Positions 7,780 to 53,689 of a DNA stretch of 64,000 bases are shown piece by piece (position 1 is the stretch's first letter; every line of letters starts with the position of its first letter). Position numbers and translations under genes: made by a program. The DNA is from Scyliorhinus canicula. Its lineage: Eukaryota. Under the pieces are notes generated by a model. That model ran no database searches. It had not been told where the DNA came from and worked only from the letters and a program-made list of their open reading frames with translations. Location of the stretch: contig NW_024055500.1 in the NCBI RefSeq assembly GCF_902713615.1, positions 248,001 through 312,000 of the forward strand. Reading direction: 5' to 3'.

Positions 7780-8760
7780 AGAAATACAGCACAGAACAGG
7801 CCCTTCGCCCACGATGTTGTGCCGAACTTTTGTCCCAGATTAAGAACAAATTAATCTACACTCCATCATTCTACCGTAATCCATGTAGCTATCCAATAGC
7901 CGCTTGAAGGTCCCTAATGTTTCCGACTCAACTACTTCCACAGGCAGTGCATTCCATACCCCCACTACTCTCTGGGTAAAGAACCTACCTCTGACATCCC
8001 CCCTATATCTTCCACCATTCACCTTAAATTTATGTCCCCTTGTAATGGTTTGTTCCTCCCGGGGAAAAAGTCTCTGACTGTCTACTCTATCTATTTCCCT
8101 GATCATCTTATAAACATCTATCAAGCCGCCCCACATCCTTCTGAAAAAAATGAGATGAAAATCAGTTATTGTCACGAGTAGGCTTCAAATGAAGTTACTG
8201 TGAAAAGCCCCTAGTCACCACATTCCGGCGCCTGTCCGGGGAGGCTGGTACGGGAATCGAACCGTGCTGCTGGCCTGCTTTAAAAGCCAGCGATTTAGCC
8301 CAGTGAGCTAAACCAGCCCCTTCTCCGTTCTAATGAGAAAAGGCCGAGCACCCTCAACCTTTCCTCGTAAGTCCTACTCTCCATTCCAGGCAACATCCTG
8401 GTAAATCTCCTTTGCACCTTTTCCAAAGCTTCCACATCCTTCCTAAAATGAGGCGACCAGAACTGCACACAGTACTCCAAATGTGGCCTGACCAAGGTTT
8501 TGTACAGCTGCATCATCACCTCACGGCTCTTAAATCCAATCCCTCTGCTAATGAACGCTAGCACACCATGGGCCTTCTTCACGGCTCTATCCACTGGAGT
8601 TTTAACTTTCAAAGATCTATGAACACAGACCCCAAGGTCTCTCTGCTCCTCCACTTTGCCAAGAACCCTACCGTTAACCCTGTATTCCGCATTCATATTT
8701 GTCCTTCCGAAATGGACCACCTCACACTTGTCAGGGTTAAACTCCATCTGCCACTTCTCA
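7780..8760 (-). mobile_element. CR1-type LINE fragment interrupted by a SINE
   Basis: WAEKWQMEFNPDKCEV..LVRPHLEYCVQFWSP motifs. Confidence 0.9.
8148..8321 (-). mobile_element. tRNA-derived SINE family B (about 175 bp, (TTTCA)n tail), representative copy inserted in a CR1 fragment
   Basis: Minus strand reads ggggctggtttagctcactggg..ggttcgattcc (A/B box-like) and ends in gtgacaataa plus a tail. Other minus copies near 830, 2185, 6205, 9580, 13775, 15530, 31230, 31570, 41700 and 52555. Plus copies near 5318 and 14600; 3' fragments at 32090, 33972 and 35843. Confidence 0.85.
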
Positions 8761-9763
8761 GCCCAGCTCAAAATTCTGCTCAAACATTCCAGAAGTGTGT
8801 GAAACCAACTGAGCCCAAAGTGAATGGAAAGAGAGGGGAGTTAGCAAAATCAGCATTGGCTAATAGAGCATGGATCATTTTGGCAATAATATTTACACTT
8901 AGACTAGGTCAAACATCTGGACTGACAGATAAAGCTGCCTAAATGTTGTTGACAAGCTCATATTTATATTTGAAATGAACCTGAAAGTCGAACCTATTAA
9001 CTGAAGTTTAATTCTGAATGAACAACAATGACAATGGTCTAAACAATACTTTGTTAGCCAATACCATCAGTTATTTACCACTGGAGTATAAAGGCAAAGA
9101 GGTGTTACTTCAAGGTACTAATGAGGCTGTAGTTACAGTTACTGTGGACAGTTTAGGGTCCACTTATTTAAGGGATTATACATCATTAGAGGCAGCACAG
9201 AGGAGGTTTATTAGGATGACCCCAGGGACAGAAATATGAGGAAAGATTCATAGATGGAATTTGCAGTGCGGAAGGAGGCCATTCGGCCCATCGAGTCTGC
9301 ACCGGCCCTTGGAAAGCGCACTCCACCCAAGCCCACACACCTCCACCCTATCCCCGTAACCCAGTAACCCCACCCAACCCTTTTGGACACCCAAGGGCAA
9401 TTTAGCGCGGCCAATCCACCCTAACCTGCACATCTTTGGACTGTGGGAGGAAACCGGAGCACCCGGAGGAAACCCACGCACACACAGTGACCCAAACCGG
9501 GAATCGGACCTGGGACCCCATGAGCTGTGAAGCGACAGTGCTAGCTACTGTGCTGCAGAGAAATAAGACCAGATAAGACTTGAAATGAAAACGAAAATGA
9601 CTTATTGTCACGAGTAGGCTTCAAATGAAGTTACTGTGAGAAGCCCCTAGTCGCCACATTCCGGCCCCTGTTCGGGGAGGCCGGTACGGGACTGAATGGG
9701 AGTCGAGCAGCTGAATCATTGAAGAATGAGCAAGTACTTTTTGTTGAGGGGTTTAATAGTGTG

Positions 9764-9823
9764 TGAATACTAACTCATACAACTTGATATTTGGAGCTGG
9801 GACAACACTCACAGTTCAACCCA
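9764..9823 (+). CDS. TRAJ: J-alpha segment NTNSYNLIFGAGTTLTVQP
   Basis: RSS actttttgt-12-tagtgtg; donor gtaagt. Confidence 0.92.
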
Positions 9824-11346
9824 GTAAGTAATTTTTCATCTCAATATCCGTTCATTTTCTCCCTCCAATCAGCTGTCAAATAAATTGCATTAAGTCGCTT
9901 CTTTGCATTTCCATAATTGGGCAATTTCAAACTCCTGTCCAGCAGAATTGACGCTGTCTTTCTTTAAACCACCAGCACTGAGGTGGGTGCAATTTCTGAC
10001 TCTCCAAATAACGTGAAGAGTTAGTTAGTCCTCAGATTCGAACCTACGGTCTTACAATTTTGGCAGTATTCACTGAACAGCAGTTCCTTGATGCGATGAG
10101 CTGACGCGTTGCGTTGATTTGCAACATTTTCCATCGCTCTCAATTTTCCGCTCAAGGGCTCTGCAGGAATCGTACATGAAACCGAACTGGTCTATATTTC
10201 TGCTTTGCGAAACAGTGTCGCAACACTGAGCAACTGCAGCCCCATGACTCGTGGTCGGTCTTTGCTCGAGTTGAGAAGATTGGTGTGGGTTTAATTTTCA
10301 ATAAAGAGATGCCAAAAATGGTTCACCCAGTGTGATGATCAACCGGTAAATCAGAAACCGCTCTCAAATGTGTACTGCTTCAATTCAATCCGGATGGCAC
10401 GGTAGCACAGCGGTTAGCACTGCTGCCTCACAGCTCCAGGGACCCGGGTTCAATTCCAGCCTTGGGTGACTGTGTGGAATTTTCACATTGAGTATAAGAA
10501 TTGGCAAGTCATGTTGCAGCTGTATAGAACCTTAGTTAGGCCACACTTGGAGTATAGTGTTCAATTCTGGTCGCCACACTACCAGAAGGATGTGGAGGCT
10601 TTAGAGAGGGCGCAGAAGAGATTTACCAGGATGTTGCCTGGTATGGAGGGCATTAGCTATGAGGAGCGGTTGAATAAACTCGGTTTGTTCTCACTGGAAC
10701 GACGGAGGTTGAGATGCACCATAGAAAGCATTCTTTCTGGTTGTATCCCAGCCTGGTATGGAGCCTGCTCTGCCCAAGACAGCAGGAAACTACAAAAGGT
10801 CGTGAATGTAGCCCAGTCCATCACACAAACCAGCCTCCCATCCATTGACTCTATCTATCATTCCCGCTTCCTCAGAAAGGCAGCCAGTGTAATTAAGGAC
10901 CCCCACGCACCCCGGACATACTCTCTTCCACCTTCTTCCGTCAGGAAAAAGATATGAAAGTTTGAGGTCGCATACCAACCGACTCAAGAACAGCTTCTTC
11001 CCCACTGCCATCAGACTTTTGAATGGACCTACCTCGTAATAAGTTGATCTTTTCTCTGCAACGTGCTATAACTGTAACATTATATTCTGCAGTCTCTCCT
11101 TCCTTCCTTATATACGGTATGCATTGTTTGTCCAGCATGCAAGACCCAATACTTTTCACTGTAGACATGTGACAATAATAAATCAAATCAAATCTAAAAT
11201 AGAAATGGCTCATCAAATCTCAATGGCCATTTAAAAACCCTTTGGACCGTCTCTTGCTTGTAGCAAGTGGAACCCTTCCCAGAAGGGCTAAATGAGCCAC
11301 CAGAGTTAATCTGAATAGGGTTTTTGCTCAAGGGTGCCCTGCTGTG

Positions 11347-11409
11347 TGAATATTGGAGTTAACAATCAGCTTATCTTTGGAGAAGGGACGACAGTAACTG
11401 TGGAGCCAA
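11347..11409 (+). CDS. TRAJ: J-alpha segment NIGVNNQLIFGEGTTVTVEP (last intact J before TRAC)
   Basis: RSS ggtttttgc-12-tgctgtg; donor gtaggt. Confidence 0.93.
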
Positions 11410-12009
11410 GTAGGTGTTCCATATTAATTATACTCTATCTATTCTAGATATAGATCTGAATGTTCTCTGTACTGCCTGTGCTTGTGTGGTGGAGCCATTG
11501 TCGAGGGCAATAAATGATTAATGGGCAGAGGTACAGGGAACATGCCAGGCAGATGGCATTAAGTCATGATGCTCATTTGGAGAGCTGGAGCGCACACAAA
11601 GGGCCAAACGGCCTCCTTCTGCACCGTAACAATTCTGCGATTCTGCGTGTGTGTAGCACATTATGACGGGAATTCTCCGGGAGTTAGGAAATACCATTGG
11701 CAAGGCGCGGGAAGAAATAATCTCACCACTAGCGATTGGCCAGGAAACATGGGGCTGGGGAACTGAATAATCCGACCCTATAGATCCGTATATATAATAT
11801 ATGTGCATATATATATATATATATATATGACATGAATTGCTGGGAGGAGATATTAGATAGACGAGGGTTGTTTTTCTTAGAACAGAAGGGGTGATCTAAC
11901 TGAGGTGTACCGAATAATGTGGGATCGAGACAGAACGATTTGTTTATCTGAGCCGAAGGGGGCATAGATTTAAGGAGATCGGTAAAAGGGTTCAGAAGGA
12001 AATGGGACA

Positions 12010-12330
12010 ATTATACTGTATATAAATAGATATGATTGCACGTGTACACATATGTACAATTACATATAGATATGCATGTGTGCGTGTACATAATATACAA
12101 TTACATACAAATATGTATGTGTGCGTACACATGGATACAATTACATACAAATATGTATGAGTGTGTGCACATGTATACAATTACATACAAATATGTATGT
12201 ATGTGCAGACATGGATACAATTACATACAAATATATGTGTACACACATACAAATAGACACAAATACATGAGTGTGAACACATATTTTAAAATGCACACAA
12301 ATATATATGTATATATAAATAAATGGTGAT
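12010..12330. repeat. AT-rich minisatellite (tacaattacatacaaatatgtatg.. units)
   Basis: Repeated units of about 40 bp. Confidence 0.85.
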
Positions 12331-12425
12331 ATATCTGTAAAATAAACGGTGATATGAGTAACGGAAGGGTGGGCAAAGACTATTAATGAACACGGAAGGT
12401 ATGTGTGAGGTAGTGTATGGCTGTG

Positions 12426-12481
12426 TGAGTGTTGCAAACTCCAAGCTGACATTTGGACGTGGGACAAGTTAGTCGAACCCA
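12426..12481 (+). pseudogene. TRAJ: J-alpha pseudogene (SVANSKLTFGRGTS*), deletion in FR4
   Basis: RSS ggtatgtgt-12-ggctgtg; frameshift gives TAG before gtcgaaccca|gtgagt. Confidence 0.85.
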
Positions 12482-12683
12482 GTGAGTGTCGGAACCAGAA
12501 GGATTGTTGGCGTAAGGTTGTTTGATAGACATTAAAGGTAAATAATCACCACGGGAATTCGAGAAGGAATGAACATCAGAAGGCGGGGTTATTTTGACTC
12601 ATCGTCAGTGAATGAAAGTGTGAGAGTGGTACATTGGGACCCCAGCACTATCTTGTGTTTTTGGAATGGGATACGTTACCCTG

Positions 12684-12746
12684 GGGGTTTTGGAGGATTG
12701 GGTCAATTACTCTTCAGAGGCAGTGACACGGCCATTGTTAATGCTG
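12684..12746 (+). pseudogene. TRAJ: J-alpha relic (GFGGLGQLLFRGSDTAIVNA)
   Basis: tgtttttgg-12-taccctg (broken heptamer); 63-nt J length; donor GT changed to GG; 258 bp after the preceding J, as in intact J pairs. Confidence 0.55.
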
Positions 12747-12879
12747 GGAAGAACTCGTTCGACTTATTCCTCAAAAGGACCTCGTGGATTAGTTTGCAAT
12801 TATAAATTCTGGTCAAAATAATGTCTTGAATGTCAATAAAATCGAAGAGGGACGAGCTTAAATTAAACTATAGTCTTAC

Positions 12880-13690
12880 GGTAGCAAAAATAGGAAGGCA
12901 GGATCATTTTTGAATGGGTGTAAATTGAGAGAGATGGATACTCAGCGAGACCTTGCTGTCCTTGTGCATCAGTCGCTGAAAGTAAGCGCGCAGGTACAGC
13001 AGGCGGTAAAGAAGGCAAATTGCATGTTGGATGTCATAGCGAGAGGATTTGAGTACAGGAATAGGGATGTTTTACTGCCATTGTATAGGGCATTGGTGAG
13101 GCCACACCTGGAGTATTGTGTGCAGTTTTGGTCTCCTTCTCTGAGGAAGGATGTTCTTGCAATGGAGGGAGTGCAGCGAAGGTTTACCAGGCTGATTCCT
13201 GGGATGGCGGGGCTGTCATGTGAGGAGAGATTGAGTCGGTTAGGATTATATTCATTGGAGTTCAGAAGAGTGAGAGAGGATCTCATAGAAACGTCTAAAT
13301 TTCTGACAGGATTAGACAGGGTAGATTAAAAAGAATGTTCCCGATGGTGGGGGAGGGGGGTGGGTGGGGGGGAAGGGTCCAGAACTAAGGACATAGTTTG
13401 AGGATAAGGGGTAAACCTTTTAGGACTGTGGTGAGGAGAAATGTCTTCACCCAGAGAGAGGTGAAGCTGTGGAATTCACTATCACAGAAAGTAGCTGAGG
13501 CCACAACGTTGTGGAATTTCGAGAAGGAATTAGATAGAGCTCTTGGGGATAAAGGGATGAAGGGATATTGGGGGAAGGTGGGATCAGAGTACTGAACTTG
13601 ATGATCAGCCATGATCAGAATGAATGGCGAGGTAGACTTGAAGGGCTGAATGGCCTCCTCCTGATTCTATTTTCTATTAATGTCCCTCTG
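12880..13690 (+). mobile_element. CR1-type LINE 3' fragment (RT C-terminus)
   Basis: LYRALVRPHLEYCVQFWSP..VQRRFTRLIPG motif. Confidence 0.9.
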
Positions 13691-14598
13691 GTCCCTTATC
13701 CTCAAACTATGACCCCTGGTTCTGGACTCCCCCACCATCGAGAACATTCTTTCTGAATCCACCCTCTCTCGGGGGATATGAAATGAAACAATGGAATGAA
13801 AATGAAAATCGCTTATTGTCACGAGTCAGCTTCAAATGAAGTTACTATGAAAAGCCCCTAGTCGCCACATTCCGGCGCCTGTTCGGGGAGGCTGTTGCGG
13901 GAATTGAACCGTGCTGCTGGCCTGCCTTGACAGCCAGCGATTTAGCCCTATGCTAAACCAGCCCCAGCGTATCAGAGTAATATCAGAGTAAAGAGTCGCC
14001 CATTTAACACAGATGAGGAGGAATTTCTTCTCCCTGAGGATTGTCATAACGGATGAGTCATGATCTCATTGAAGGGCGGGGCAGACAGGATGGGCTGAAT
14101 GGGCTGCTTCTGCTCCTACATCTTATGGCCTTATCGTCCAGGTGTACCCGAGGGTTCCGAATGCAGAATGGACACTGTCCCTAAGCAGAACTGTCCCTTG
14201 GGCAGCTCGGTAGCATTGTGGATAGCGCAATTGCTTCACAGCTCCAGGGTCCCAGGTTCAATTCCCGGCTGGGTCACTGTCTGTGCGGAGTCTGCACGTT
14301 CTCCCCGTGTCTGCGTGGGTTTCCTCCGGGTGCTCCGGTTTCCTCCCACAGTCCAAAGATGTGCAGGTTAGGTGGATTGGTCATGCTAAATTGCCCTTAG
14401 TGTTCAATAAAAAAGATTGGGTGGGGTTACTGGGTTATGGGGATAGGGTGGAGGCGTGGGCTTGGGTAGGGTGCTCTTTCCAAGAGCCGGTGCAGACTCG
14501 ATGGGCCGAATGGCCTCCTTCTGCACACTGTAAATTCTATCTATGTAAGAACGCACTGGTTAGCTCTCAGCTAACAAAGTTTCGCACCAACCAGCCTC

Positions 14599-14770
14599 GG
14601 GGCTAGTTTAGCACAGTGGGCTAAACAGCTGATTTGTAGTCCTGCACCATGCCAGCAGCGCGGGTTCAATTCCCGTACCGGCCTCCCCGAACAGGCGCCG
14701 GAATGTGGCGACTAGGGGCTTTTCACAGTGACTTCATTTGAAGCCTACTTGTGACGATAAGCGATTATTA
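14599..14770 (+). mobile_element. SINE family B copy in the J-C intron
   Basis: Same consensus in the + orientation; contains CACAGTG-23-ACGATAAGC. Confidence 0.85.
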
Positions 14771-14907
14771 ATTTTGGACAGTGAGAAATGAAATGAAAAT
14801 GAAGTGAATGGAGCATGATGTCTCAGTTTGGCACGTTATAACACCTGATGACTTCAACCCTAACTCAGGAGGCCCTTCCTTACCCCTTCTCATTTTGCCC
14901 TCCACAG

Positions 14908-15186
14908 AATCCGATTATTCAGAACCATCCGTCTACGTCCTGCCTCCGAGGGGGAATCAGCCGAACGTTTCCCCCGTGTGCCTGGTGACGGATTATTTCC
15001 CCAACAACGTAAGCGTGTCCGTGAAGAATGGGGCCGCCAGCCAGGAACGAAACCATTCGTATGCCTCGCTCTCCATCGCAGATCGCAGCTACAGCATGGT
15101 GGGATTCCTGAACAGCCCTGCAAGCCAGCAGGATGAGAAATTTGAATGTACAGTTGGAGGGGAATGGAGGACATTGCCCGAAGCTG
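14908..15186 (+). CDS. TRAC: TCR alpha constant region exon 1 (Ig C domain)
   Basis: Acceptor ttttgccctccacAG at 14907 and donor GTGAGT at 15187; 279 nt, phase 1/1. Translation xSDYSEPSVYVLPP..VCLVTDYFPNNVSV..DRSYSMVGFL..FECTVGGEWRTLPEA has both Ig cysteines and the PSVY/CLxTD motifs of C-alpha. Confidence 0.95.
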
Positions 15187-15277
15187 GTGAGTTGCTCTGC
15201 TTTTTAATAATACTCGTACGGGAATTACAAATCATTTATTGGGATGGTGTCAATTATCCATGTCATTCTCATTTCAG

Positions 15278-15325
15278 CTCAAGTCAAGAGGCAGTGCATA
15301 GCTGTTGAGGAAGATAGTGATGGCG
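15278..15325 (+). CDS. TRAC: TRAC exon 2 (hinge/connecting peptide)
   Basis: Acceptor ttctcatttcAG, donor GTGAGT; 48 nt, phase 1/1; AQVKRQCIAVEEDSDG carries the interchain Cys. Confidence 0.92.
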
Positions 15326-16381
15326 GTGAGTATACCATGTGTTTGCGTACCTATGTGTATGTCTGCGTGTTTGTGCACGTTTTGTCTGTGTGCCTCTGTG
15401 TGTGTGAATACCTTTGTGCACACTCAAGTTCATAAATCATTGTGCGTGAGTAACAGTGTGTGTGTGTGTAAGTCTTTGTGGGTGTGTTTGTGTCGGCGAA
15501 TGTGAGGGACTTTGCACTGAAGTTGAAGAATGAAATGAACATCGCTTATTGTCACGAGTAGGCTTCAATGAAGTTACTGTGAAAAGCCCCTAGTCGCCAC
15601 ATTCCGGCGCCTGTCCGGGGAGGCTGGTACGGGAATCGAACCGTGCTGCTGGCCTGCTTGGTCTGCTTTAAAGTCAGAGATTTAGCCTGGTGAGCTAAAC
15701 CAGCAGAAGATGGGCAGCAGGGTAGCATGGTGGTTAGCATAAATGCTTCACAGCTCCAGGGTCCCAGGTTCGATTCCCGGCTGGGTCACTGTCTGTGTGG
15801 AGTCTGCACGCCTCCCCCTGTGTGCGTGGGTTTCCTCCGGGTGCTCCGGTTTCCTCCCATTGTCCAAAGATGTGCGGGTTAGGTGGATTGGCCATGCTAA
15901 ATTGCCCTTAGTGTCCTAATAAAAGTAAGTTTAAGGGGGGGGTTGTTGGGTTATGGGTATGAGAATGACAAATGGGTATGGGTATGGGGTGGATACGTGG
16001 GTTTGAGTCGGGTGATCATGGCTCGGCACAACATTGAGGGCCGAAGGGCCTGTTCTGTGCTGTACTGTTCTAAGATGCTGAAGTGTGTGTGTGTGTGTGT
16101 GTGTGTGTTTATGCATGTGTGTGCCTGTGAATGTGTTTTCGCATGTTTGTTTTTACGTGTGTGAGTGCGTGCATGCATGGTGGTGTGTCTGTGTGCCCAA
16201 GTATGTGTGTGTGTGTTGAGTTTGTGGACGCATGATGGTGTGTCTGTGTATTCAAGTGTCAAGTGTGTGGTGGCGTGTTTGTGGCCAAGTCTGTATGTGT
16301 GTGTGAGTGTGGGCATGGATGGTGGTGTGTTTACGTGTCCAAGTGTGTGTGTGTGAGTGTGAGCTTTTGCATGCATGGGTG

Positions 16382-16513
16382 NNNNNNNNNNNNNNNNNNN
16401 NNNNNNNNNNNNNNNNNNNNNNNNNNNNNNNNNNNNNNNNNNNNNNNNNNNNNNNNNNNNNNNNNNNNNNNNNNNNNNNNNNNNNNNNNNNNNNNNNNNN
16501 NNNNNNNNNNNNN
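16382..16513. other. Assembly gap (N run) in TRAC intron 2, next to a TG repeat
   Basis: Ns in the sequence. Confidence 1.
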
Positions 16514-16623
16514 GCAGTGCTCCCGTTCCCTCCCATTCTGTGTGCGCATCAATGTGGAGGAAGGGTTCCCTTTGTGACGAAGGCGGTTTGCTCATTCTCT
16601 GCAATTGCTTCTTCTTCCCGCAG

Positions 16624-16730
16624 TCGAACACTTGAACACCCTTTCCCTGACAGTCATCGGATTGCGAATTCTCTTCTTAAAAAGCATCGTCTTCAACGCC
16701 TTGATGACCTTTCGGATCTGGGTCTCATAA
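16624..16730 (+). CDS. TRAC: TRAC exon 3 (TM and cytoplasmic tail, stop TAA)
   Basis: Acceptor cttcttcttcccgcAG; VEHLNTLSLTVIGLRILFLKSIVFNALMTFRIWVS* has the conserved TM Arg and Lys and the alpha-type FNxLMTxRxW tail. Donor GTGAGT at 16733, 2 nt after the stop. Confidence 0.95.
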
Positions 16731-23160: not shown

Positions 23161-24115
23161 CCCTTTCAGTTGTCCTGCTTAAATTTTGTACCCCTCATTA
23201 GCCACCCAAACAAGAATTCACCCTTGCTCCGTGATGTTCAAATGCCAAGCCTATTGTTTTCTTGCAAAGCTAGCATTCTGCCATTAATTATGCGATTAGA
23301 ACATAGAACATAGAACATAGAACAGTACAGCACAGAACAGGCCCTTCGGCCCTCGATGTTGTGCCGACCCATGATCACCCTACTCAAACCCACGTATCCA
23401 CCCTATACCCGTAACCCAACAACCCCCCCCTTAACCTTACTTTTATTAGGACACTACGGGCAATTTAGCATCGCCAGTCCACCTAACCCGCACATCTTTG
23501 GACTGTGGGAGGAAACCGGAGCACCCGGAGGAAACCCACGCACACAGGGGGAGGACGTGCAGACTCCACACAGACAATGACCCAGCCGGGAATCGAACCT
23601 GGGACCCTGGAGCTGTGAAGCATTTATGCTAACCACCATGCTACCCTCCAACGTGAGCGGAGAGCCAAATGAATGAACTTACCCCCAAACTTAATGTTGA
23701 CAAGGGCGTCTGTGCGGAGTCTGCACGTCCTCCCCGTGTGTGCGTGGGTTTCCTCCGGGTGCTCCGGTTTCCTCCCACAGTCCAAAGATGTGCGGGTTAG
23801 GTGGATTGGCCATGCTAAATTGCCCGTAGTGTCCTAAAAAATAAGGTTAAGTTTGGGTTTGGGTTACGGGTATAGGGTGGATACGTGGGTTTGAGTAGGG
23901 TGATCATTGCTCGACACAACACCGAGGGCCGAAGGGCCTGTTCTGTGCTGTACTGTTCTATGTTCTATGTTCTATGATCACACGTTAGGTGAATTAGATA
24001 TTCTGAATTCTCCCTCTGTGTACCCGAACAGGCGCCAGAATGTGGCGACTGGGTGCCTCATGATCAAACCTTACTCGGTAGCATGAGGGTTCTTGTGAGG
24101 CAGATTGTTACTGTG

Positions 24116-24701: not shown

Positions 24702-24764
24702 TGACTTATGATAATACCGGAAAACTGACGTTTGCAACTGGGACTAAACTAACTGTGCAACCAA
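24702..24764 (+). CDS. TRAJ: J-alpha segment TYDNTGKLTFATGTKLTVQP (FATG variant)
   Basis: RSS ggtttgtgc-12-cattgtg; donor gtaagt. Confidence 0.88.
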
Positions 24765-25508: not shown

Positions 25509-26068
25509 GTGAGTACAGCATGTTTTCTTTTAACTGAAGCGATGTTGGGAGAGTTAGACATTAAGATACCCCAACGAGGGCAGCACAGTGGCCTAGTGGT
25601 TAGCACAACCGCCTCACGGCGCTGAGGTCCCAGGTTCGATCCCGGCTCTGGGTCGCTGTCCGTGTGGAGTTTGCACGTTCTCCCCGTGTGTGCGTGGGTT
25701 TCCTCCGGGTGCTCCGGTTTCCTCCCACAGTCCAAAGATGTGCGGGTTAGGTGGATTGGCCATGCTAAATTGCCCGTAGTGTCCTAAAAAATAAGGTTAA
25801 GGGGGGGTTGTTTGGGTTACGGGTATAGGGTGGATACGTGGGTTTGAGTAGGGTGATCATTGCTCGGCACAACATCAAGGGCCGAAGGGCCTGTTCTGTG
25901 CTGTACTGTTCTATGTTCTATGTTCTATGATCACACGTTAGGTGAATTAGATATTCTGAATTCTCCCTCTGTGTACCCGAACAGGCGCCGGAATGTGGCG
26001 ACTGGGTGCCTCATGATCAAACCTTACTAGGTAGCATGAGGGTTCTTGTGAGGCAGATTGTTACTGTG

Positions 26069-27471: not shown

Positions 27472-27540
27472 GTGAGTACAGCATGTTTTCTTTTAACTGA
27501 AGCGATGTTGGGAGAGTTAGACATTAAGATACCCCAACGA

Positions 27541-31073: not shown

Positions 31074-31872
31074 GTAAGTATTTAGAATAGCAATCCTTCA
31101 GCATTGTTTTCCTGATCTCGAAAGTGTCAATTCTTGAGTCAAGTACCTCAGGAATTTCAAAAAAACGTTGAAAAAGACAAAACAATATCTTCCCCAGAAA
31201 CAATGACAAAATAAAAATCTATTGCGTTGTTGAGATGAAACGAAAATGGCTTATTGTCACGAGTAGGCTTCTAATGAAGTTACTGTGAAAAGCCCCTAGT
31301 CACCACATTCCGGCACCTGTTCAGGAAGGCTGTAGCGGGAATTGAAACGTGCATGTTAGTCTAGATAGTCTGCTTTCAAAGCCAGCGAGTTAGCCCTGTG
31401 CTAAAGAGCCCATGAAGCCTAAACGTGAAGAGGATGAAGCGTTTTGCGACGTGTATGTTTGAGGTATATGGATGTATCGATATTGCCTGGCTGTCAGGCA
31501 ATGTATGGAATGTTGGATTGCTCGTCCAGCAAGGCAAGGTAAACCCATATTTAAATTAAACTCTCTGGTAAAAATGAAAATGAAATGAAATGAAAACCGC
31601 TTATTGTCACGAGTAGGCTTCTAATGAAGTTACTGTGAAAAGCCCCTAGTCACCACATTCCGGCGCCTGTCCGGGGAGGCTGGTACGGGGAGGCTGGTAC
31701 GGGAATTGAACCGTGCTGCTGGCCTGCTTGGTCTGCTTTAAAAGCCAGCGATTTAGCCCAGTTAGCTAAACCAGCCCCAAAATGGGTGCCTCTTACTTTA
31801 TATTGGTCCAGCCAGATAGAAAAACAGTAACCATTAACTCAGGAGGTTTTTGTTAGACAGTGGGGCACTGTG

Positions 31873-31932: not shown

Positions 31933-32257
31933 GTAAGTTTTGCATTTGACAGAAACCTGATGGGTAATCCAGAAAATATATTTTTTAATAAAACACAGTT
32001 TTGAAATGAAAAGGGAAACAGTAATTAGTAATCGCAGCGTCAGATTGGGCAGCAGCATCTTATTGAGTTCTGATAAAGTCATTGTGCCGTGGCGACTAGG
32101 GGCTTTTCACAGTAACGTCATTTGAAGCCAACTTGTGACAATAAGCAATTTTCATTCCATCATGTATTCCCTTGCCCTGTATAACCTGACTGAGACTATG
32201 TTAGAGAGATGAAATGTTGGTCAGGAAGTGATTTTTGTTAAGGGATGTATCAGTGTG

Positions 32258-33361: not shown

Positions 33362-33756
33362 GTAAGTCTTTATAATCCACTGTCTATTTACCTGTATTAT
33401 CTATTTATTTTATTATTTCAATGCTATGAGGGTATCGCTTGCTGGGTCAGCGTGTATTGTCCACCCCTAATTGCCCTCATACGGGTATTAAAGAGTTCTC
33501 AACTAATGTTAAACAACTATTGGTGAGGTGCATGTTTGAGGTATATGGATGTATCGATATTGCCTGGCTGTCAGGCAATGTATGGAATGTTGGATTGCTA
33601 GTCCAGCAATTAGACAGACAGCAAGGCAAGGTAAACCCATATATAAATTAAACTCTCTGGTAAAATGGGTGGCTCTTTACTTTATATTGCTCCAGCCAGA
33701 TAGAAAAACAGTAATCATTGACTCAGGAGGTTTTTGTTAGACAGTGGGGCACTGTG

Positions 33757-33816: not shown

Positions 33817-34140
33817 GTAAGTTTTGCATTTGACAGAAACCTGATGGATAATCCAGAAAATATTTTTTTAAATAAAACAGTTTTGAAATGAAAAGGGAAA
33901 CAGTAATTAGTAATCGCAGTGTCAGATTGGGCAGCAGCATCTTATTGAGTTCTGATAAAGTCATTGTGCCGTGGCGACTAGGGGCTTTTCACAGTAACTT
34001 CATTTGAAGCCTACTTGTGACAATAAGCCATTTTCATTCCATCATGTATTCCCTTGCCCTGTATAACCTGAATTGAGACTATGTTAGAGAGATGAAATGT
34101 TGGTCAGGAAGTGATTTTTGTTAAGGGATGTATCAGTGTG

Positions 34141-35688: not shown

Positions 35689-36011
35689 GTAAGTTTTGCA
35701 TTTGACAGAAACCTGTGGATAATGCAGAATTTTTTTTTTTATAAAACACAGTTTTGAAATGAAAAGGGAAACAGTAATTAGTAATCGCAGCGTCAGATTG
35801 GACAGCAGCATCTTATTGAGTTCTGATAAAGTCATTGTGCCGTGGCGACTAGGGGCTTTTCACAGTAACTTCATTTGAAGCCGACTTGTGACAATAAGCC
35901 ATTTTCATTCCATCATGTATTCCCTTGCCCTGTATAACCTGAATTGAGACTATGTTAGAGAGATGAAATGTTGTTCACGAAGCGATTTTTGTTAAGGGAT
36001 GTATCAGTGTG

Positions 36012-41280: not shown

Positions 41281-41999
41281 GTAAGTGAAGCTTCATTCTG
41301 CATTTTTATGATGGCGTTGGTCGTCAAATTCTTAATAACGATTGCCAGTTCGTTAGAGTTAAATTGAAGAAATAATTTGCAGAAAAGAGTGAAGAGATAG
41401 ATGTGGAACTCATCTGATGGAAACCTTGAAGCAATGATGATGGGTTTTGATGGGGTAGATCTGGAGACTATTCATCCTCACTGAATGGAAGATAGTCATT
41501 AATAATTGCAATCAATTCACCGGAAACGTCTGGACCTAGAGATTGTTTGAATGTAGAACTCGCTGTAATGCGGAGCACTTGACGCAAACAATATATATCC
41601 CAAATGGAAAGCTAGATTAATAAATGACAGAGAGAAAGGAGTGGCTGGATATGTCGAAAGGCCGAGAGGAACTAGGGTGGGAGCAGATTTGGTCTCTGTA
41701 TTTGAAAATGAAATGAAAATCGCTTATTGTCACAAGTAGGCTTCAAATGGAGTTACTGTGAAAAGCCCCTAGTCGCCACATTCCGGCGCCTGTTCAAGAA
41801 GGCTGGTACGGGAATTGAACCGTGCTGCTGGCCTTGTTCTGCATCACAAACCAGCTGTCTGGCCCACTGACTAAATAATCCTGACATGTAGCTTGCACAA
41901 TTTTGCATTAATGGGATTTAGCGATGCCAGTTAATCAAATGCCAGTCAGTCAGGTCAATAACGTTCCAGGGGGTTTATGTCAAAGGCTTAAACACTGTG

Positions 42000-42497: not shown

Positions 42498-42560
42498 TGA
42501 ATGGTGGAGGCAACAGAGAGGTTATCTTTGGAAGTGGCACAACGTTAACTGTGGGACCAA
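42498..42560 (+). CDS. TRAJ: J-alpha segment NGGGNREVIFGSGTTLTVGP
   Basis: RSS ggttttggg-12-tgctgtg; donor gtatgt. Confidence 0.9.
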
Positions 42561-43044: not shown

Positions 43045-43104
43045 TGAGTTATGGAAACAGCCAACTTACTTTTGGAAGTGGAACCAGACTAATTGTGGAA
43101 CCCA
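43045..43104 (+). CDS. TRAJ: J-alpha segment SYGNSQLTFGSGTRLIVEP
   Basis: RSS ggtttttgt-12-ggctgtg; donor gtaagt. Confidence 0.93.
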
Positions 43105-45165: not shown

Positions 45166-45228
45166 TGAATTCAGGAGGTGCAACTCCACTCATATTTGGG
45201 AGCGGCACCAAACTCACCGTAACACCCA
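45166..45228 (+). CDS. TRAJ: J-alpha segment NSGGATPLIFGSGTKLTVTP
   Basis: RSS agtttttgc-12-cattgtg; donor gtaagt. Confidence 0.93.
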
Positions 45229-45769
45229 GTAAGTAAGATATCATTTGGTGGATATCATCGTATCGGATGGTGATGTCTAGCACGAGGGGACATAGCTTCA
45301 AATTGAGGGGAGATAGATATAGGACAGATGTCAGAGGTAGGTTCTTTACTCAGAGAGTAGTAAGGGTGTGGAATGCCCTGCTTGCAACAGTGGTGGACTC
45401 GCCAACATTAAGGGCATTTAAATGGTTATTGGATAGACATATGGACGATAAGGGAATAGTGTAGATGGGCTTTAGAGTGGTTTCACAGGTCGGCGCAACA
45501 TCGAGGGCCGAAGGGCCTGTACTGCGCTGTAATGTTCTACGTGTTCTATAATTGTATATGTAAACAAAACGGCTACTTCAACTGTGTTAAGGAATCCTGT
45601 CCTGTTAATGATCTGCAGGATGATTTAAGCTATTTGGAGGGTAATAGAGAGACACTTGATTTGAATTGGCCAACATATTGTTCCACTAATTAAAAAACAG
45701 GCTGAAGATGTCAGAATAAATGTCACAAATCATAACTTTCCACAATGGCTGGCCTGTGTTTTTGTCAAG

Positions 45770-46520
45770 AACATAAGAACATAAGAACATAAGAACTAGG
45801 AGCAGGAGTAGGCCATCTGGCCCCTCGAGCCTGCTCCGCCATTCAATGAGATCATGGCTGATCTTTTGTGGACTCAGCTCCACTTTCCGGCCCGAACACC
45901 ATAACCCTTAATCCCTTTATTCTTCAAAAAACTATCTATCTTTACCTTAAAAACATGTAATGAAGGAGCCTCAACTGCTTCACTGGGCAAGGAATTCCAT
46001 AGATTCACAACCCTTTGGGTGAAGAAGTTCCTCCTAAACTCAGTCCTAAATCTACTTCCCCTTATTTTGAGGCTATGCCCCCTAGTTCTGCTGTCACCCA
46101 CCAGTGGAAACAACCTGCCCGCATCTATCCTATCTATTCCCTTCATAATTTTAAATGTTTCTATAAGATCCCCCCTCATCCTTCTAAATTCCAACGAGTA
46201 CAGTCCCAGTCTACTCAACCTCTCCTCATAATCCAACCCCTTCAGCTCTGGGATTAACCTAGTGAATCTCCTCTGCACACCCTCCAGCGCCAGTATGTCC
46301 TTTCTCAAGTAAGGAGACCAAAACTGAACACAATACTCCAGGTGTGGCCGCACTAACACCTTATACAATTGCAACATAACCTCCCTAGTCTTAAACTTCA
46401 TCCCTCTAGCAATGAAGGACAAAATTCCATTTGCCTTCTTAATCACCTGTTGCACTTGTAAACCAACCTTCTGTGACTCATGCACTAGCACACCCAAGTC
46501 TCTCTGAACAGCGGCATGCT
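45770..46520 (-). mobile_element. CR1-type LINE fragment
   Basis: RDLGVLVHES..LVRPHLEYCVQFWSP motif; (ACATAAGA)n tail. Confidence 0.9.
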
Positions 46521-46842
46521 TTAGGTGGATCCCCATTGTATGGATAAAACATTGGAATACAAGCTGATTCTCCTGGCGAGAGAGTTTAATACATCCTGCA
46601 GTGCTTGGAGCCATCTGATGAAGTGACACAGAGATTGTCACTTCACTGAAATAGAAATAATTTACCTCTTTTGGAAATTAAGTGAGGTGTGTCTATTTAT
46701 TATTGATGACCATTTCAAATCATACATACGGGTGGATTCACAGCGCTGGGATTCAGTGATATCTAGTACTAAAACAGAAGGGAGAAGCAAATGCCCTAAA
46801 GTTAGTCAGAAGGGGGTTTTTGCTAAAGGACTTACCTCTGTG

Positions 46843-46902
46843 TGAATGATGGTATCAGAAATCTTATCTTTGGAAGCGGAACAAAGTTAATTGTGGTGCC
46901 AA
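46843..46902 (+). CDS. TRAJ: J-alpha segment NDGIRNLIFGSGTKLIVVP
   Basis: RSS ggtttttgc-12-ctctgtg; donor gtaggt. Confidence 0.92.
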
Positions 46903-47800
46903 GTAGGTATTAATTAATAATTAAAAGACTGCATGTGTATTTACGTACATCTTCACGTTCTTATCAACAATTTCTGTGTTTGATTCATTCATAATGTTCT
47001 TGTTGGTAGCGGATAGGACAATTCTGGTCGTATGTGTGATGGTTCCCAACGTTGTAACTGCATGATTGTGCATTCTATCAAGCCAAAATGTGTACCTGAA
47101 ATTAACAGGGTTGCGTGGGTCAACGTCCCTTTGTTAAAAAGTCAAATAATCTGGCCCGATTATTTTTTTAAAAATCTCGATGCAACTTCCAGTTCGACGG
47201 CGCCTCTGGTGAAACAAAGTGCTACCAGACATGTCACTGGAGCATTGTTATACATTATTATACAACTGCTCGGCCCAGGACCACAAGAAACTTCAGAGAG
47301 ACGTGAACACAGTCCAGTCCATCACACAAACCCGCCTCCCATCCATGGACTCCATCTACACCTCCCGCTGCCTGGGGAAAGCGGGCAGCATAATCAAAGA
47401 CCCCTCCCACGCGGCTTACTCACTCTTCCAACTGTTTCCATCGGGCAGGAGATACAGAAGTCTGAGAACACGCACTAACAGACTCAAAAACAGCTTCTTC
47501 CCCCCACTGTCACCAACTCCTAAACTCTTATGGACTGACCTCATTAACACTGCACCCTGTATGCTTCATCCGACGTTGGTGTTTATGTAGTTACATTGTA
47601 GACCTTGTGTTGCCCTATTATGTATTTTCTTTTATTCCTTTTTCTTCCCATGTACTTAATGATCTGTTGAGCTGCTCGCAGAAAAATACTTTTCACTGCA
47701 CCTCGGTATACGGGACAATAAACAAAGCCAATCCATCGCTAAGATAGGCACAGAAGGATAATTAACTCAGTGGGTTTTTGTGAGGGGGTGCAGGGCTGTG

Positions 47801-47860
47801 TGAATGATGGGGGCTGGAAGCTTATCTTTGGAAGTGGCTCGAGAGTAATCGTGGAACCCA
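47801..47860 (+). CDS. TRAJ: J-alpha segment NDGGWKLIFGSGSRVIVEP
   Basis: RSS ggtttttgt-12-ggctgtg; donor gtaagt. Confidence 0.93.
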
Positions 47861-48051
47861 GTAAGTGGTGCATTTGGAAATGACAATGTCATAAATCTGA
47901 TTGGAAGCAAATAATGTCACCACTATAATCTGGAGAATATAATAAGTGGACCGCTTGGCTATTTCCAGTCCTTGAAGTGAGAGGGAGATATGAAAGGCAC
48001 ATTGGGGAAACAGCACTATTCAGAATCCTTGCAAAGGGATAGATTACTGTG

Positions 48052-48098
48052 TGGATGAATAGTGTTTGGAGGGCGTGTCAAGCTTATTGTTAACCTTG
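48052..48098 (+). pseudogene. TRAJ: Truncated J-alpha pseudogene (..IVFGGRVKLIVNL)
   Basis: aatccttgc-12-tactgtg; shortened 5' end; splice donor lost (GT to CT). Confidence 0.65.
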
Positions 48099-48359
48099 CT
48101 TAGAATTGATTCTGAGAACCAGGTAAATGATCCTGGAAAGTTGCAATGTATGAATTCTGCTCAGAGTAATACATTTGTGTGTTCTGTAAAAGGATATCAT
48201 AAATATATGAAGTTAATTGATCAAAAGGAGCCTGAAATGATGGGGGTTGCGGCACTTGTTAATATTTGAACCTCGCACCTTGCTAAATGTAACATTCCGT
48301 TGATTTTGCCGATGGTCTATATACCCAGCAGAGTTTCTGCATTGGTATTTAATGCTGTG

Positions 48360-48416
48360 TGAATAACTACAATAAGCTCACATTTGGCTCTGGGACCAGA
48401 CTAACTGTGCAGCCCA
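48360..48416 (+). CDS. TRAJ: J-alpha segment NNYNKLTFGSGTRLTVQP
   Basis: RSS agtttctgc-12-tgctgtg; donor gtaagt. Confidence 0.92.
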
Positions 48417-49123
48417 GTAAGTGAAGTTCCAGTCTGCATTTTTGTGATTATTATGCTGATGATAGTTAACCACTGTTTCAGGAATCAATGCGGCCTGTTC
48501 TTCACAATTTAAAGCTAACACGGGAAAATCTAAAAGGGCATTTAAATGGTCATTGGATAGATGATAAGGGAATAGTGTAGATGGGCTTTAGAGTGGTTTC
48601 ACAGGTCGGCGCAACATCGAGGGCCGAAGGGTCTGTACTGCGCTGTAATGTTCTATGTTCTAAACTCCCACCACCCTCTGGGGAAATGGTGTTTCCTCAC
48701 ATTCCCTTCGAAATCTCCTGCCCCGCACCTTAAATCTACGCCCCCTGGTGATTGACCCCTCCACCAAGGAGAAACGTTTTTTCCTGTCTACTCTATCTAT
48801 GTCCCTTCTAATTTAATACATCTCAATCATGTCCCCCCTCCTGCTCCCCTGCTCCAAGGAAACCCCATTCTATCCAATCTCTCTCCATAACTAAAACCCT
48901 CCAGCCCGGCCAACATCCTGGTAAATCTCCTCTGCACCCTTTCCAGTTCTATCACATCCCTCCTTATAATGTGGATTCCAGAACTGCGCACAATTCCTGG
49001 ACAGTAGGTTGAGACATATATCAATAATTTTGACTTATAACCGGGCTGATGTAGACATGTAACATTCAACTGATGTACTTGGCGTGAGGTGAAAGGGTTT
49101 CTGCACTGGTCTGTAATGCTGTG

Positions 49124-49180
49124 TGTATAACTATGGCAAGCTAGTATTTGGATCGGGGACTAAACTAACTGTGGAACCCA
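49124..49180 (+). CDS. TRAJ: J-alpha segment YNYGKLVFGSGTKLTVEP
   Basis: RSS ggtttctgc-12-tgctgtg; donor gtgagt. Confidence 0.92.
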
Positions 49181-49340
49181 GTGAGTGAAATTTCGTTCTG
49201 ATTTCTTTCCCCCCCCCATCTACGATGGGGATAGTGACAATATTACGGTTGGTGTTAAGAGTTAACTTTAGTTGCCGAAGGGGCAGAGAATCAGTATAGT
49301 TCATCTGAAGGGGGTTTTTGCTAAAGGGTACAATGCTGTG

Positions 49341-49403
49341 TGAATTTTGGAAGCGGTACAAAACTTACCTTTGGACAGGGGACAAAAGTAACTGTGGTAC
49401 CAA
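49341..49403 (+). CDS. TRAJ: J-alpha segment NFGSGTKLTFGQGTKVTVVP (last J in window)
   Basis: RSS ggtttttgc-12-tgctgtg; donor gtaggt. Confidence 0.92.
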
Positions 49404-50447
49404 GTAGGTATTTATTAATAATTCTAGATTTCTTAAATATTTGTGTTTATACTTGTATATATATATGTGTGTGTGTGTGCCTGTCTGTATGTGTGTGTCT
49501 ATATGTATGTCTATGCTTGTGTTTGTCTGTGTGTGTGTGTGTATATACGTTTGAGTTGTATATGTGTGTCTTTGTGCGTCCATGTGTTCAATTCGCCCAT
49601 AAATTTGGAATATTTGCCCCATTTGATTTGCCATTTCATAATTCCATGTCCGTATTTAAGGAGAAAATGATTAGTACAGCAGGGCTAAAGGAATGGAAGA
49701 ATGGACTGATACAGTTAGATAAAGATGGTGGGATTGTTCTCGTATGGGGCAAAAACTTGAATTAACCCATTGGGCCAAGAATCATGGACTGTGGGGGACA
49801 TTTATTTGCAACATTAAGTATCATCATGTTATAGTTCATGCCTGAACATTAATCTCACGACATAGAGGTTATTCCTGTTGGTGTGCACTGAAACCTCAAT
49901 ATGTTTATGTACATGTGTGATTTTCTGTGAAATATAGAAGCATTGGCATGTTATTCCTATGTGTGCATGTGTGATGTTAAACGAGGGAGGGAGAGAGGGA
50001 CGGAGGGTGGGAGAGATGGGGAGAGAGAGAGATGGAGAGAGGGAGATGTAGAGAGGGCGACAGACAGAGGTAGAGAGAGAGTTGGGGAGAAGATTAAAAT
50101 ATGCATGTTAAATCAGGAGAGAGATGGAGGGGGAGAGATGGAGGGGGAGAGATGGAGGGGGAGAGATAGAGGGGAGAGATGGAGGGAGAGAGAGATGGAT
50201 TGGATTGGATTGGATTTATTTATTGTCACGTGTACTGACGTACAGTTAAAAGTATTTTTCTGCGAGCAGCTCAACAGATCATTCAGTACATGGGGAGAAA
50301 AGGGAACAAAAGAAAATACATAATAGGGCAACACAAGGTCCACAATGTAGTTGTACATAAGCACCGGCATCGGATGAAGCATACAGAGAGAGGTGGAGAG
50401 AGATAGAAATGGAGGGGAGAGAGAGGTGGAGAGAGAGAGGTGGAGAG

Positions 50448-50946
50448 NNNNNNNNNNNNNNNNNNNNNNNNNNNNNNNNNNNNNNNNNNNNNNNNNNNNN
50501 NNNNNNNNNNNNNNNNNNNNNNNNNNNNNNNNNNNNNNNNNNNNNNNNNNNNNNNNNNNNNNNNNNNNNNNNNNNNNNNNNNNNNNNNNNNNNNNNNNNN
50601 NNNNNNNNNNNNNNNNNNNNNNNNNNNNNNNNNNNNNNNNNNNNNNNNNNNNNNNNNNNNNNNNNNNNNNNNNNNNNNNNNNNNNNNNNNNNNNNNNNNN
50701 NNNNNNNNNNNNNNNNNNNNNNNNNNNNNNNNNNNNNNNNNNNNNNNNNNNNNNNNNNNNNNNNNNNNNNNNNNNNNNNNNNNNNNNNNNNNNNNNNNNN
50801 NNNNNNNNNNNNNNNNNNNNNNNNNNNNNNNNNNNNNNNNNNNNNNNNNNNNNNNNNNNNNNNNNNNNNNNNNNNNNNNNNNNNNNNNNNNNNNNNNNNN
50901 NNNNNNNNNNNNNNNNNNNNNNNNNNNNNNNNNNNNNNNNNNNNNN
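50448..50946. other. Assembly gap (N run) within a GA-rich tract, 1 kb after the last J
   Basis: Ns in the sequence. Confidence 1.
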
Positions 50947-51029
50947 NTCTCTCTCGATGATGCATTTTTGCAGAGAGGAGTCTGCATTGCATGGGCAAGG
51001 TGCAGATCTGACCCATTTTAAACAGCGTG

Positions 51030-51400
51030 TGTTGACAGGAAGTGTGGTAGAGAGAGAGAGAGGCGGTAAGTGGAAACTCAGATGTGACAGCGTGCTGCAG
51101 CCCGTGCAGAGAGCTGAAAGTGGGTCACTGAGAGAGAGAGAGAGAGAGAGAGAGGCACAGGAGGTGGGCGGTACAGGTGTGCACAGAGCAAGCGCGCGCG
51201 TGTGTGTGTGTTGGGGGGGTGGTGGGTGGAATGGAAAGTTCCAGAAAGCTATCTGCCCCTCGATTCTCTCTGATGCGGTCAGCGTTGTTTTCCACTGACA
51301 GCACAGACCGAGATGGGCTGACAGCCAGAAAGTGGATTTCGGTTAGACCGCACGCACAAACAACATCTCGCAAACTTGCAAAAAAAACAAAAGAACTGCA
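51030..51400. promoter_or_regulatory. Candidate T-cell enhancer island A
   Basis: CAGGAAGTGTGGT (Ets plus Runx), TGCGGT, ACCGCA, TGGAAA and E-boxes in non-repeat sequence. Confidence 0.4.
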
Positions 51401-53689
51401 ACGCACGACCAGCTGCCCTCACCTCCACTGCTCCAATTCGTCTCCTTGAGCTGCTGCCCATGAATGGAGTGTCAGGTTGTCTGATCTCCTGACGTTGCTT
51501 TGAGAGACTTGTCCCCTTATAGAACATAGAACAGTACAGCACAGAACAGGCCCTTCGGCCCTCAATGTTGTGCCGAGCCATAATCACCCCACTCAAACCC
51601 ACGTATCCACCCTATACCCGTAACCCAACAACCCTTAACCTTACTTTTATTAGGACACTACAGGCAATTTAGCATGGCCAATCCACCTAACCCGCACATC
51701 TTTGGACTGTGGGAGGAAACCGGAGCACCCGGAGGAAACCCACGCACACAGGGGGAGGACGTACAGACTCCACACAGACAGTGACCCAGCCGGGAATCGA
51801 ACCTGGGACCCTGGAGCTGTGAAGCATTTATGCTAACCACCATGCTACCCTGCTGCCCCTTGTTCGAATACAATCAGAAAGTTAGCTCACGTTCCCTGGA
51901 ATCATCACAGAATCATAGAATTTACAGTGCCGAAGGAGGCCATTCGGCCCATCGAGTCTGCACCGGCCCTCGGAAAGAGCAGCCTACCTAAGCCCCACAC
52001 CTCCCCCTTTATCCCCGTAACCCAGTAACCCCGCCCCACCATTTCTGAACACTAAGGGCAATTTATCATGGCCAATCCACCTAACCCGCACATCTTTGGA
52101 CTGTGGGAGGAAACCGGAGCTCCCGGAGGAAACCCACGCACACAGGGGGAGGACGTGCAGACTCCGCACAGACAGTGACCCAAGCCGGGAATCGAACCTG
52201 GAGCTGTGAAGCAACTGTGCCAACCGCAGTGGCTAACGTCAGGAACAGAGGAATTCGGAGCAGGAGGGAGGCCAATCAGCCCTTCCAGGGCTGCACGGCG
52301 GTTCGCACTGTTGCTTCACGGCGCCAGGGTCCCGGGTTCGATTCCCGGCTTGCTTCGCTGTCTGCGCGGAGTCTGTGCACGCCCTCCCCGTGTCTGCCCG
52401 CATTTCCTCCGGGTGCTCCGGTTTCCTCCCACAAGTCCCGAAAGACGTGCTGTTAGGTGAATAGGGCATTCTGAATTCTCCCTCTGTGCACCCGAACAGG
52501 CGCCATCGTGTGGCGGCTGGAGTATTTTCACACTAACTTCATTGCCGTGTTAATGAAAATGAAAATGGCTTATTGTCACGAGTAGGCTTCAAATGAAGTT
52601 ACTGTGAAAAGCCCCTAGTTGCCACATTCCGGCGCCTGTCCGGGGAGGCTGGTACGGGAATCGAACCGTGCTGCTGGCCTGCTTGGTCTGCTTTAAAAGC
52701 CAGCGATTTAGCCCAGTGAGCTAAACCAGCCCCTTAATGTAAGCCTACTTGTGACACGAATAAAAATGATAGATTATTATTATCAGCCTGCCCCACCATT
52801 GAATAAGATCATAGAATCATGGAGCCATAGAATTCCTACAGTGCGGAAGAAAGCCATTCAATAGGGCCATAAAACATTAAGACCATAAGATATAGAAGCA
52901 GAATTAGGCCACTCGGCCCATCGAGTCTGCTCCACCATTCAATCATGGCTGATATTCTCCCCATCGCCATTCTCCTGCCTTGTCCCCATAACCCCTGACC
53001 CCTTATTAATCAGGAACCTGTCTATCTCTGTCTTAAAGACACTCAGTGATTTGGCCTCCACAGCCTTCTGCGGCAAAGAGTTCCACCGATTCACCACCCT
53101 CTGGCTGAAGAAATTCCTCCTCATCTCTGTTTTAAAGGATTGTCCCTTTAGTCTGAGATGGTGTCCTCTGGTTCTAGATCTTCCTACAAGTGGAAACATC
53201 CTCTCCACGTCCACTCCATCTCGGGCCATTCGGCCCATCGGGTCTGTACCGACCCTCTGAAAGACCACCCTACCTCGGCCCACTCCCCCTGCACTATCTC
53301 TTAGACCCTATCTCACCTTTTGGACACAGAGGGCCAATTTAGCATGTCCAATCCACCTAACCTGCACATCTTTGGACTGTGGGAGGAAACCGGAGCACCC
53401 GGAGGAAACCCACGCAGGCACGGGGGGGGGGGGGGGGAGAAACCCACGCAGACAGTCACCCAAGGCCAGGATTGGACCTGGGTCCACTGTGCCAACCCGC
53501 TGCCCTTCATGCCCTAGGGCACCCAGATCCCTCTACATCTCAGAGCTCTGTAATCTCTCAACGTTTAGATAATACGCTTCTTTATCACTCTTCGTCCAAA
53601 GTGGACAATTTCATATTTGTCCACATGATACTCCATTTGCCACTTCTTTACCCACTCACTTAACTGATCGATATCCCTTTGTAACCTTC

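Follow-up and report, generated by a model that had tools for sequence, protein, structure and literature searches.

A short interspersed nuclear element (SINE) scattered through a T cell receptor alpha (TCR-alpha) locus of Scyliorhinus canicula ends in a motif that resembles a recombination signal sequence (RSS) with a 23-nt spacer. The stretch analyzed (RefSeq assembly GCF_902713615.1, contig NW_024055500.1, positions 248,001 to 312,000 of the forward strand), hereafter called the window, spans 64,000 nucleotides and contains many joining (J) segments whose own signals have 12-nt spacers (12-RSS). Our results indicate that the motif is probably a real cryptic 23-RSS, compatible with the 12/23 rule, that arose by chance from the tail hairpin of a retrotransposon. 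Four lines of evidence carry this reading: the anatomy of the element, the scores of the motif as a signal, its neutral decay, and a homologous tail with a different spacing in a sister family. Since no test showed the locus using or preserving the motif, the most fitting interpretation is a cryptic signal of accidental origin.

A SINE family carries the motif in its 3' tail

Searching the window for CACAGTA-N23-ACAATAAGC with up to three mismatches gave 13 matches, against 0.54 expected from shuffled sequences. Eleven of the 13 fell within copies of a single SINE family, here named SINE-B. Ten of these eleven were the exact 23-nt sites that a first-pass annotation of this DNA had listed, each recovered by the pattern search at its given position, and the other was a degenerate copy at 13811-13849. 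The copies that it had reported with spacers of 22 or 24 nt were also recovered, and the one placed at about 5430 occupies 5429-5466. This excess over shuffles reflects one repeated family, and the relevant chance figure is the one per family given below.

The block CACAGTA-22/23/24-ACAATAAGC is carried by a tRNA-derived SINE of ~187 bp. BLAST with one copy, followed by alignment, identified 17 copies or fragments in the window, representing ~15 independent insertions. The element runs from a tRNA-like head through a conserved body and the RSS-like block (consensus 128-166) to a (CATTT)n-like end. A tRNA-like fold was called by ARAGORN in three copies, and the head contains GGTTCGATTCC, which we take to match the B-box form. 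Alignment of the copies bore out the earlier claim that the motif is part of the SINE-B consensus, here that of 16 tail-bearing copies. These copies correspond to 14 independent insertions, eight of which combine CAC, exact 23-nt spacing, and an A6A7 nonamer. SINE-B has no terminal inverted repeats, and its target duplications are A-rich or 6 bp long. Its local density is about one copy per 4 kb, with ~0.30 per kb within the J arrays and 0.15 outside them (11 vs 4 events, too few to mean anything). A metagenome scan with a 20-nt SINE-body pattern returned no further SINE-B copies.

The insertion history of several copies could be read from the sequence around them. All four plus-strand copies reported in the first-pass annotation were present, but those at 32108, 33990, and 35861 are a single insertion. 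They derive from one 5'-truncated fragment (SINE positions 111-178) that was multiplied when three J segments were duplicated in tandem as a 1.88-kb unit. A minus-strand copy at ~31572-31780, flanked by an A-rich target duplication, interrupts tandem unit 1 of this array 65 bp upstream of a J nonamer. The empty site for this insertion is uninterrupted in units 2-4 (compared at 33660, 35532, and 37414), which indicates that SINE-B was still active after the J triplet had been duplicated. Another minus-strand copy (52545-52737) sits in the tail of a copy of a second family, the Deu-like SINE-A, with the target duplication TTAATG. The interval 52080-52790 therefore holds a SINE-B (-) nested in the 3' tail of a SINE-A (+), closely preceded by a SINE-A copy in inverted orientation.

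Quality of the motif as a 23-RSS

Signals were scored with a log-odds matrix built from the heptamers and nonamers of 39 local J segments, ignoring spacer content. Leave-one-out scores of the J segments themselves ranged from 12.0 to 26.7 bits with a median of 23.4 bits, and the low end of this range may include non-functional J segments. The SINE-B consensus scored 17.8 bits, above five of the 39 J segments, which places it in the bottom ~13% of the J range. Its heptamer, CACAGTA, is also used by eight local J segments and fits CACNRYR, and CAC is intact in 14 of the 16 SINE-B copies. Eleven of the 16 copies (9 of the 14 independent ones) have a spacer of exactly 23 nt, and the other five have one of 22 or 24 nt. 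The nonamer ACAATAAGC retains the locally invariant C2, A6, and A7 and reads A-T-A at positions 4-6; its deviations, T5 and G8, each occur in one of the 39 local J segments. In silico, the motif is compatible under the 12/23 rule with every J segment in the window, as the first-pass annotation had held.

Published high-throughput assays of heptamers and nonamers are consistent with a working signal of this kind. CACNRYR heptamers were favored more than 100-fold over CACNYRY in a high-throughput assay (PMC9723617). A screen of 23-RSS nonamers showed that functional nonamers have purine-A/T-purine at positions 4-6 and that T5 on the top strand is tolerated (PMC12711392). The coding flank of the SINE motif is GGGGCTTTT, a poly-T run, in 14 of the 16 copies and is not of a favorable kind: the poly-pyrimidine flank TACTTT yielded 5% of signal-joint reads vs 92% for CTATAC (PMC9723617). 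The SINE spacer begins with AC, while the preferred start is NT. Overall, the SINE tail is a plausible signal whose predicted strength is low to middling.

The probability of a match of at least 17.7 bits arising by chance was 4.6 x 10^-7 per position, or about 3-4 x 10^-4 per 187-bp family (two strands, two spacer lengths). Over a whole genome repeat library, the number expected by chance is of the order of one or a few, and the chance density at the SINE score is roughly 900 per Gb. The 23-RSS match is uncommon, yet within reach of accident.

With its CAC-heptamer, 23-nt spacer, and A-rich nonamer, flanking no gene segment, the motif resembles the cryptic RSSs (cRSSs) that are RAG off-targets in vertebrate genomes. 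Like them, it scores below most real signals and far above background, and it fits the functional rules. Unlike cRSSs that arise site by site, it sits in the consensus of an abundant SINE and has thus been multiplied by retrotransposition. No literature linking SINEs with cryptic RSSs was found in the library searched, which is not proof of absence.

A tail hairpin and a sister family with another spacing

The last 47 nt before the SINE-B repeat end were predicted to fold into a three-tier hairpin in five of the six copies tested (-9.1 to -13.4 kcal/mol, z of -2.2 to -3.9). In one tier, GGCUU (GGCTT just upstream of the heptamer) is paired with the AAGCC that ends the "nonamer". In the middle stem, the "heptamer" CACAGUA forms the 5' arm and pairs with UACUYGUG, the last 8 nt of the "spacer". 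A further tier pairs CUUC with GAAG.

SINE-A has a homologous tail, CACACTA-34 nt-ACACGAATA, whose loop is ~11 nt longer; this was read from a full copy rejoined across a SINE-B insertion. Because the two tails align and that of SINE-A has 34-nt spacing, the 23-nt spacing is specific to the SINE-B family. The shared tail also implies that the heptamer-like and nonamer-like pieces are inherited tail parts.

In stringent-type pairs of SINEs and long interspersed nuclear elements (LINEs), the element that is recognized is a conserved 3' stem-loop (PMC3747384). SINE-B is like the tails of this type, such as UnaL2/UnaSINE1 and the elasmobranch HE1 SINE with the HER1 LINE (PMC3747384), in having a tRNA head, a conserved 3' block predicted to form a stem-loop, and a short tandem-repeat end. 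The likeness, which is one of features alone, extends to target-site duplications, to the presence of 5'-truncated copies, and to the sharing of the tail with another SINE family.

In the mechanism that we propose, a tRNA-derived SINE carries the motif as its 3' tail module. The tail RNA is predicted to fold as a 47-nt hairpin before the (CATTT)n-like end, a structure of the kind recognized by stringent-type LINE reverse transcriptases. Shortening of this tail would accidentally have set a CAC-heptamer and an A-rich nonamer 23 nt apart. Since the shortened tail lies in the consensus, each insertion would deposit a rule-compatible cryptic 23-RSS, the TCR-alpha J arrays included. If RAG were to use these signals, the products would be rare, non-productive SINE-to-J joins. 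Their geometry agrees with that described in the first-pass annotation: plus copies upstream of a J segment are convergent with its signal and would give deletions, while minus copies point the same way as the J RSS and would yield inversions. Such joins would be lost in later V-to-J rearrangements, so their cost would be small. Deep sequencing of junctions in thymus DNA might reveal the predicted SINE-J joints, a prospect that we rate as somewhat short of even.

A different origin would be the capture by a retrotransposon of a genuine RSS or a RAG/Transib-type terminal repeat, from which the tail would then descend. The joint presence of heptamer, exact 23-nt spacing, and nonamer, expected at ~3 x 10^-4 per family by chance, would suit such a descent. 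Nevertheless, the heptamer pairs with the spacer's end within the hairpin, and the spacing in the sister family is 34 nt. The tRNA head, the simple-repeat end, the form of the target duplications (A-rich or 6 bp), and the lack of terminal inverted repeats also argue against it. To our knowledge, hairpin pairing between heptamer and spacer is not a feature of RSS spacers. We regard capture of a signal as hardly credible and retain the hairpin accident as the likely origin of the motif.

Retention of the motif and the question of an editing role

Divergence from the consensus over the 14 independent copies was 3.1% in the heptamer, 4.0% in the nonamer, 5.6% in the spacer, 5.6% in the preceding body, and 17% in the tRNA-like head, where the high value reflects subfamily differences. 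CAC was intact in 12 of the 14 independent copies, compared with ~11.8 expected at the neutral rate. The 22-nt and 24-nt spacers, found in five of the 14, stem from indels in the hairpin loop. Heptamer and nonamer are neither specially kept nor lost relative to neighboring SINE positions, and these figures give no sign of selection in either direction.

Germline relics of RAG activity were also sought in the window, where we found no SINE body ending at the heptamer border and no heptamer-to-heptamer signal joints. The SINE body precedes the heptamer in every tail-bearing copy. In headless or tailless copies, the breaks fall at positions 77, 103, and 111 of the consensus, and none falls at 128.

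As a separate observation, a SINE-A/B-like piece at 23984-24052 and 25937-26005 (+) stops several bases before the heptamer position would be reached. It lies 32 nt upstream of the nonamer of a J segment and was duplicated together with that segment. The piece at 23984-24052 was considered as a coding joint and ruled out, as the adjoining J segment has a full RSS.

The first-pass annotation had suggested that the copies act as decoy or editing signals. A rival explanation makes them co-opted locus-editing elements of the deltaRec or kappa-deleting type, retained because they remove or flip portions of the J array. Like deltaRec in TRD and the kappa-deleting element in IGK, SINE-B provides a non-coding 23-RSS that could in theory be paired with 12-RSSs of the same locus. 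DeltaRec and the kappa-deleting element occupy single, fixed positions and have documented recurrent rearrangements, whereas the SINE-B insertions are scattered, in decay, and in part recent. What speaks for co-option is limited to 12/23 compatibility and the location of copies inside the arrays. On the other side, the element is multi-copy and decays neutrally, and a third of the copies are without 23-nt spacing. At least one copy is recent and absent from the paralogous units. Copies are situated within the J arrays or past them, and a deletion there would serve no obvious purpose in editing. The ~15 dispersed insertions revealed no conserved unique position. Co-option for editing is very unlikely. 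Given the neutral retention, the five off-length spacers among 14, the placement of the motif in hairpin arms, the 34-nt sister tail, and the poly-T flank, a decoy or editing role is unsupported. The alternative named in the same annotation, that the match is coincidental and has no function, fits better.

Orientation of the copies and possible use by RAG

Several observations weigh against an accidental and unused signal. All ten of the best 23-spacer matches in the window are SINE copies, while the best non-SINE match scored 10.8 bits. The motif obeys both published functional rules, CACNRYR in the heptamer and purine-A/T-purine in the nonamer, which makes real RAG activity plausible. The independent cRSS-bearing copies comprise 3 plus and 11 minus (binomial p = 0.057), against 14 plus and 8 minus in SINE-A (Fisher p = 0.019 between the families), in a post hoc test on 14 events in which some SINE-A matches may be duplicates. 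This skew could hint at selection against convergent copies. The proposed origin of the tail has weak points too: the comparison with SINE-A involved one full tail and one truncated tail. In addition, unlike known stringent-type LINE/SINE pairs, SINE-B has no partner LINE in the window, where no LINE 3' end with this tail was found and all 17 tail matches were SINE-B or one SINE-A copy. For this reason, we can only infer a LINE-recognition role for the hairpin.

Part of this evidence would fit a working RAG off-target. Under this explanation, RAG occupying J 12-RSSs in the recombination center engages the SINE 23-cRSS at a measurable rate, harmful plus copies are purged by selection so that the SINE influences the makeup of the locus, and the genome bears a very large cryptic load. 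The 17.8-bit consensus lies inside the range of real J signals and is rule-compatible, and the compliance with both rules and the shortage of plus copies point the same way. Two of the three independent plus copies are moreover weakened, by a spacer of 22 nt at 5429 and by the nonamer ACGATAAGC at 14724. Scanning RAG uses convergent cryptic signals in an orientation-specific manner and would favor the plus copies. However, the orientation test is borderline as well as post hoc, and the poly-T coding flank is unfavorable. The sole intact plus fragment was retained and even triplicated ~112 bp upstream of a J coding start. Intact fractions were also alike in the two orientations, at 6 of 11 minus and 1 of 3 plus copies. 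We consider a working off-target unlikely. A more far-reaching version holds that the SINE tail is a genuine RAG substrate, that retrotransposition seeded the genome with very many 23-RSSs, and that the shortage of plus copies in the J arrays is the footprint of selection against RAG deletions; this is less likely still. An accidental cryptic signal, decaying with its SINE, is the reading that we prefer.

Locus setting and feature list

The window contains 39 J segments with FGxGT and a 12-RSS, all on the plus strand, and ~5 more that are variant or broken, for a total of ~44. The first-pass annotation had placed the SINE copies in one J array. The 12-RSS J segments are real, but they form two arrays split by a complete TCR-alpha constant gene (TRAC) at 14874-16727 (Table 1). 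The position of TRAC between the arrays implies that the J segments up to ~12.4 kb belong to this TRAC and that the second array, of ~33 segments, sits downstream of a TRAC. No second TRAC was found within the window. The location of J array 2 past TRAC suggests duplicated J-C units in Scyliorhinus canicula. The TRAC exons align with the constant regions of TCR-alpha in Scyliorhinus torazame (78% identity; 77% by tblastn) and Mustelus asterias, and the C exon was found in several sequencing runs that we guess to be RNA.

Variant J segments with a good 12-RSS were observed on the plus strand at 24702, 25446, 26655, 29267, and 12426. Their motifs are FATGT (in two paralogues), LGGGT, FETGT, and FGRGTS*, of which the last bears a stop and lies shortly before the TRAC region.

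The window has two assembly gaps. The first (16382-16513) is in a TRAC intron within GT-rich simple sequence (flank 16260-16381), and the second (50448-50947) follows the last J segment within GA-rich simple sequence (flank 50380-50447). Simple-sequence DNA probably caused both. Neither gap touches a SINE copy or a J segment, and distances that span the gaps are uncertain.

Table 1. RSS-like motifs of SINE-B and main features of the TCR-alpha locus in the window
Feature	Position	Strand	Remarks
Cryptic 23-RSS, CACAGTA-23-ACAATAACT	8164-8202	-	best-scoring copy, 20.6 bits; full SINE 8145-8325
Cryptic 23-RSS, nonamer ACAATAAGT, 16.1 bits	9600-9638	-	5'-truncated copy 9574-9695; 126 bp upstream of J coding start
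Cryptic 23-RSS, consensus form, 17.8 bits	31249-31287	-	copy 31228-31415
Cryptic 23-RSS, consensus form	31599-31637	-	copy ~31572-31780, inserted in tandem unit 1 after the duplication
Cryptic 23-RSS, consensus form	41722-41760	-	copy 41697-41885
Cryptic 23-RSS in the copy nearest the consensus	52568-52606	-	copy 52545-52737, downstream of all J segments, within SINE-A tail
Cryptic 23-RSS, perfect heptamer CACAGTG, weakened nonamer ACGATAAGC, 13.4 bits	14724-14762	+	J-C intron, 112 bp before TRAC exon 1
Cryptic 23-RSS, 5'-truncated fragment 32085-32166	32108-32146	+	deletional orientation; ~112 bp upstream of next J coding start; founder of the 33990 and 35861 copies
Cryptic 23-RSS, paralogue of 32108 fragment	33990-34028	+	via 1.88-kb tandem J duplication
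Cryptic 23-RSS, paralogue of 32108 fragment	35861-35899	+	via 1.88-kb tandem J duplication
SINE-B motif, 22-nt spacer	2204-2241	-	
SINE-B motif, 22-nt spacer	5429-5466	+	copy 5313-5480
SINE-B motif, 24-nt spacer	6228-6267	-	
SINE-B motif, 22-nt spacer	15544-15581	-	TRAC intron after exon 2
SINE-B motif, destroyed heptamer CATAGTA	13811-13849	-	
SINE-B motif, destroyed heptamer CAGAGTA, 22-nt spacer	841-878	-	
J array 1, 3' part, 12-RSS J segments	324-12500	+	last is a broken J at ~12426
TCR-alpha constant gene (TRAC), complete	14874-16727	+	C1-set exon 14874-15194; connecting-peptide exon ~15274-15360; transmembrane exon 16626-16727
J array 2, ~33 J segments with 12-RSS, downstream of TRAC	24088-49450	+	

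Conclusions

If the motif is inert or nearly so, it is an ordinary cryptic signal, and it serves mainly as a caution that repeats can imitate RSSs closely in antigen-receptor loci. If RAG uses it, the shark genome would hold orders of magnitude more good 23-cRSSs than chance would provide. It would then offer a natural test of how recombination centers, scanning orientation, and coding-flank quality guard a genome from its own recombinase. Were the SINE tail a genuine substrate, SINE-B would exemplify in nature how a retrotransposon multiplies recombination signals, with RAG shaping where the copies survive.

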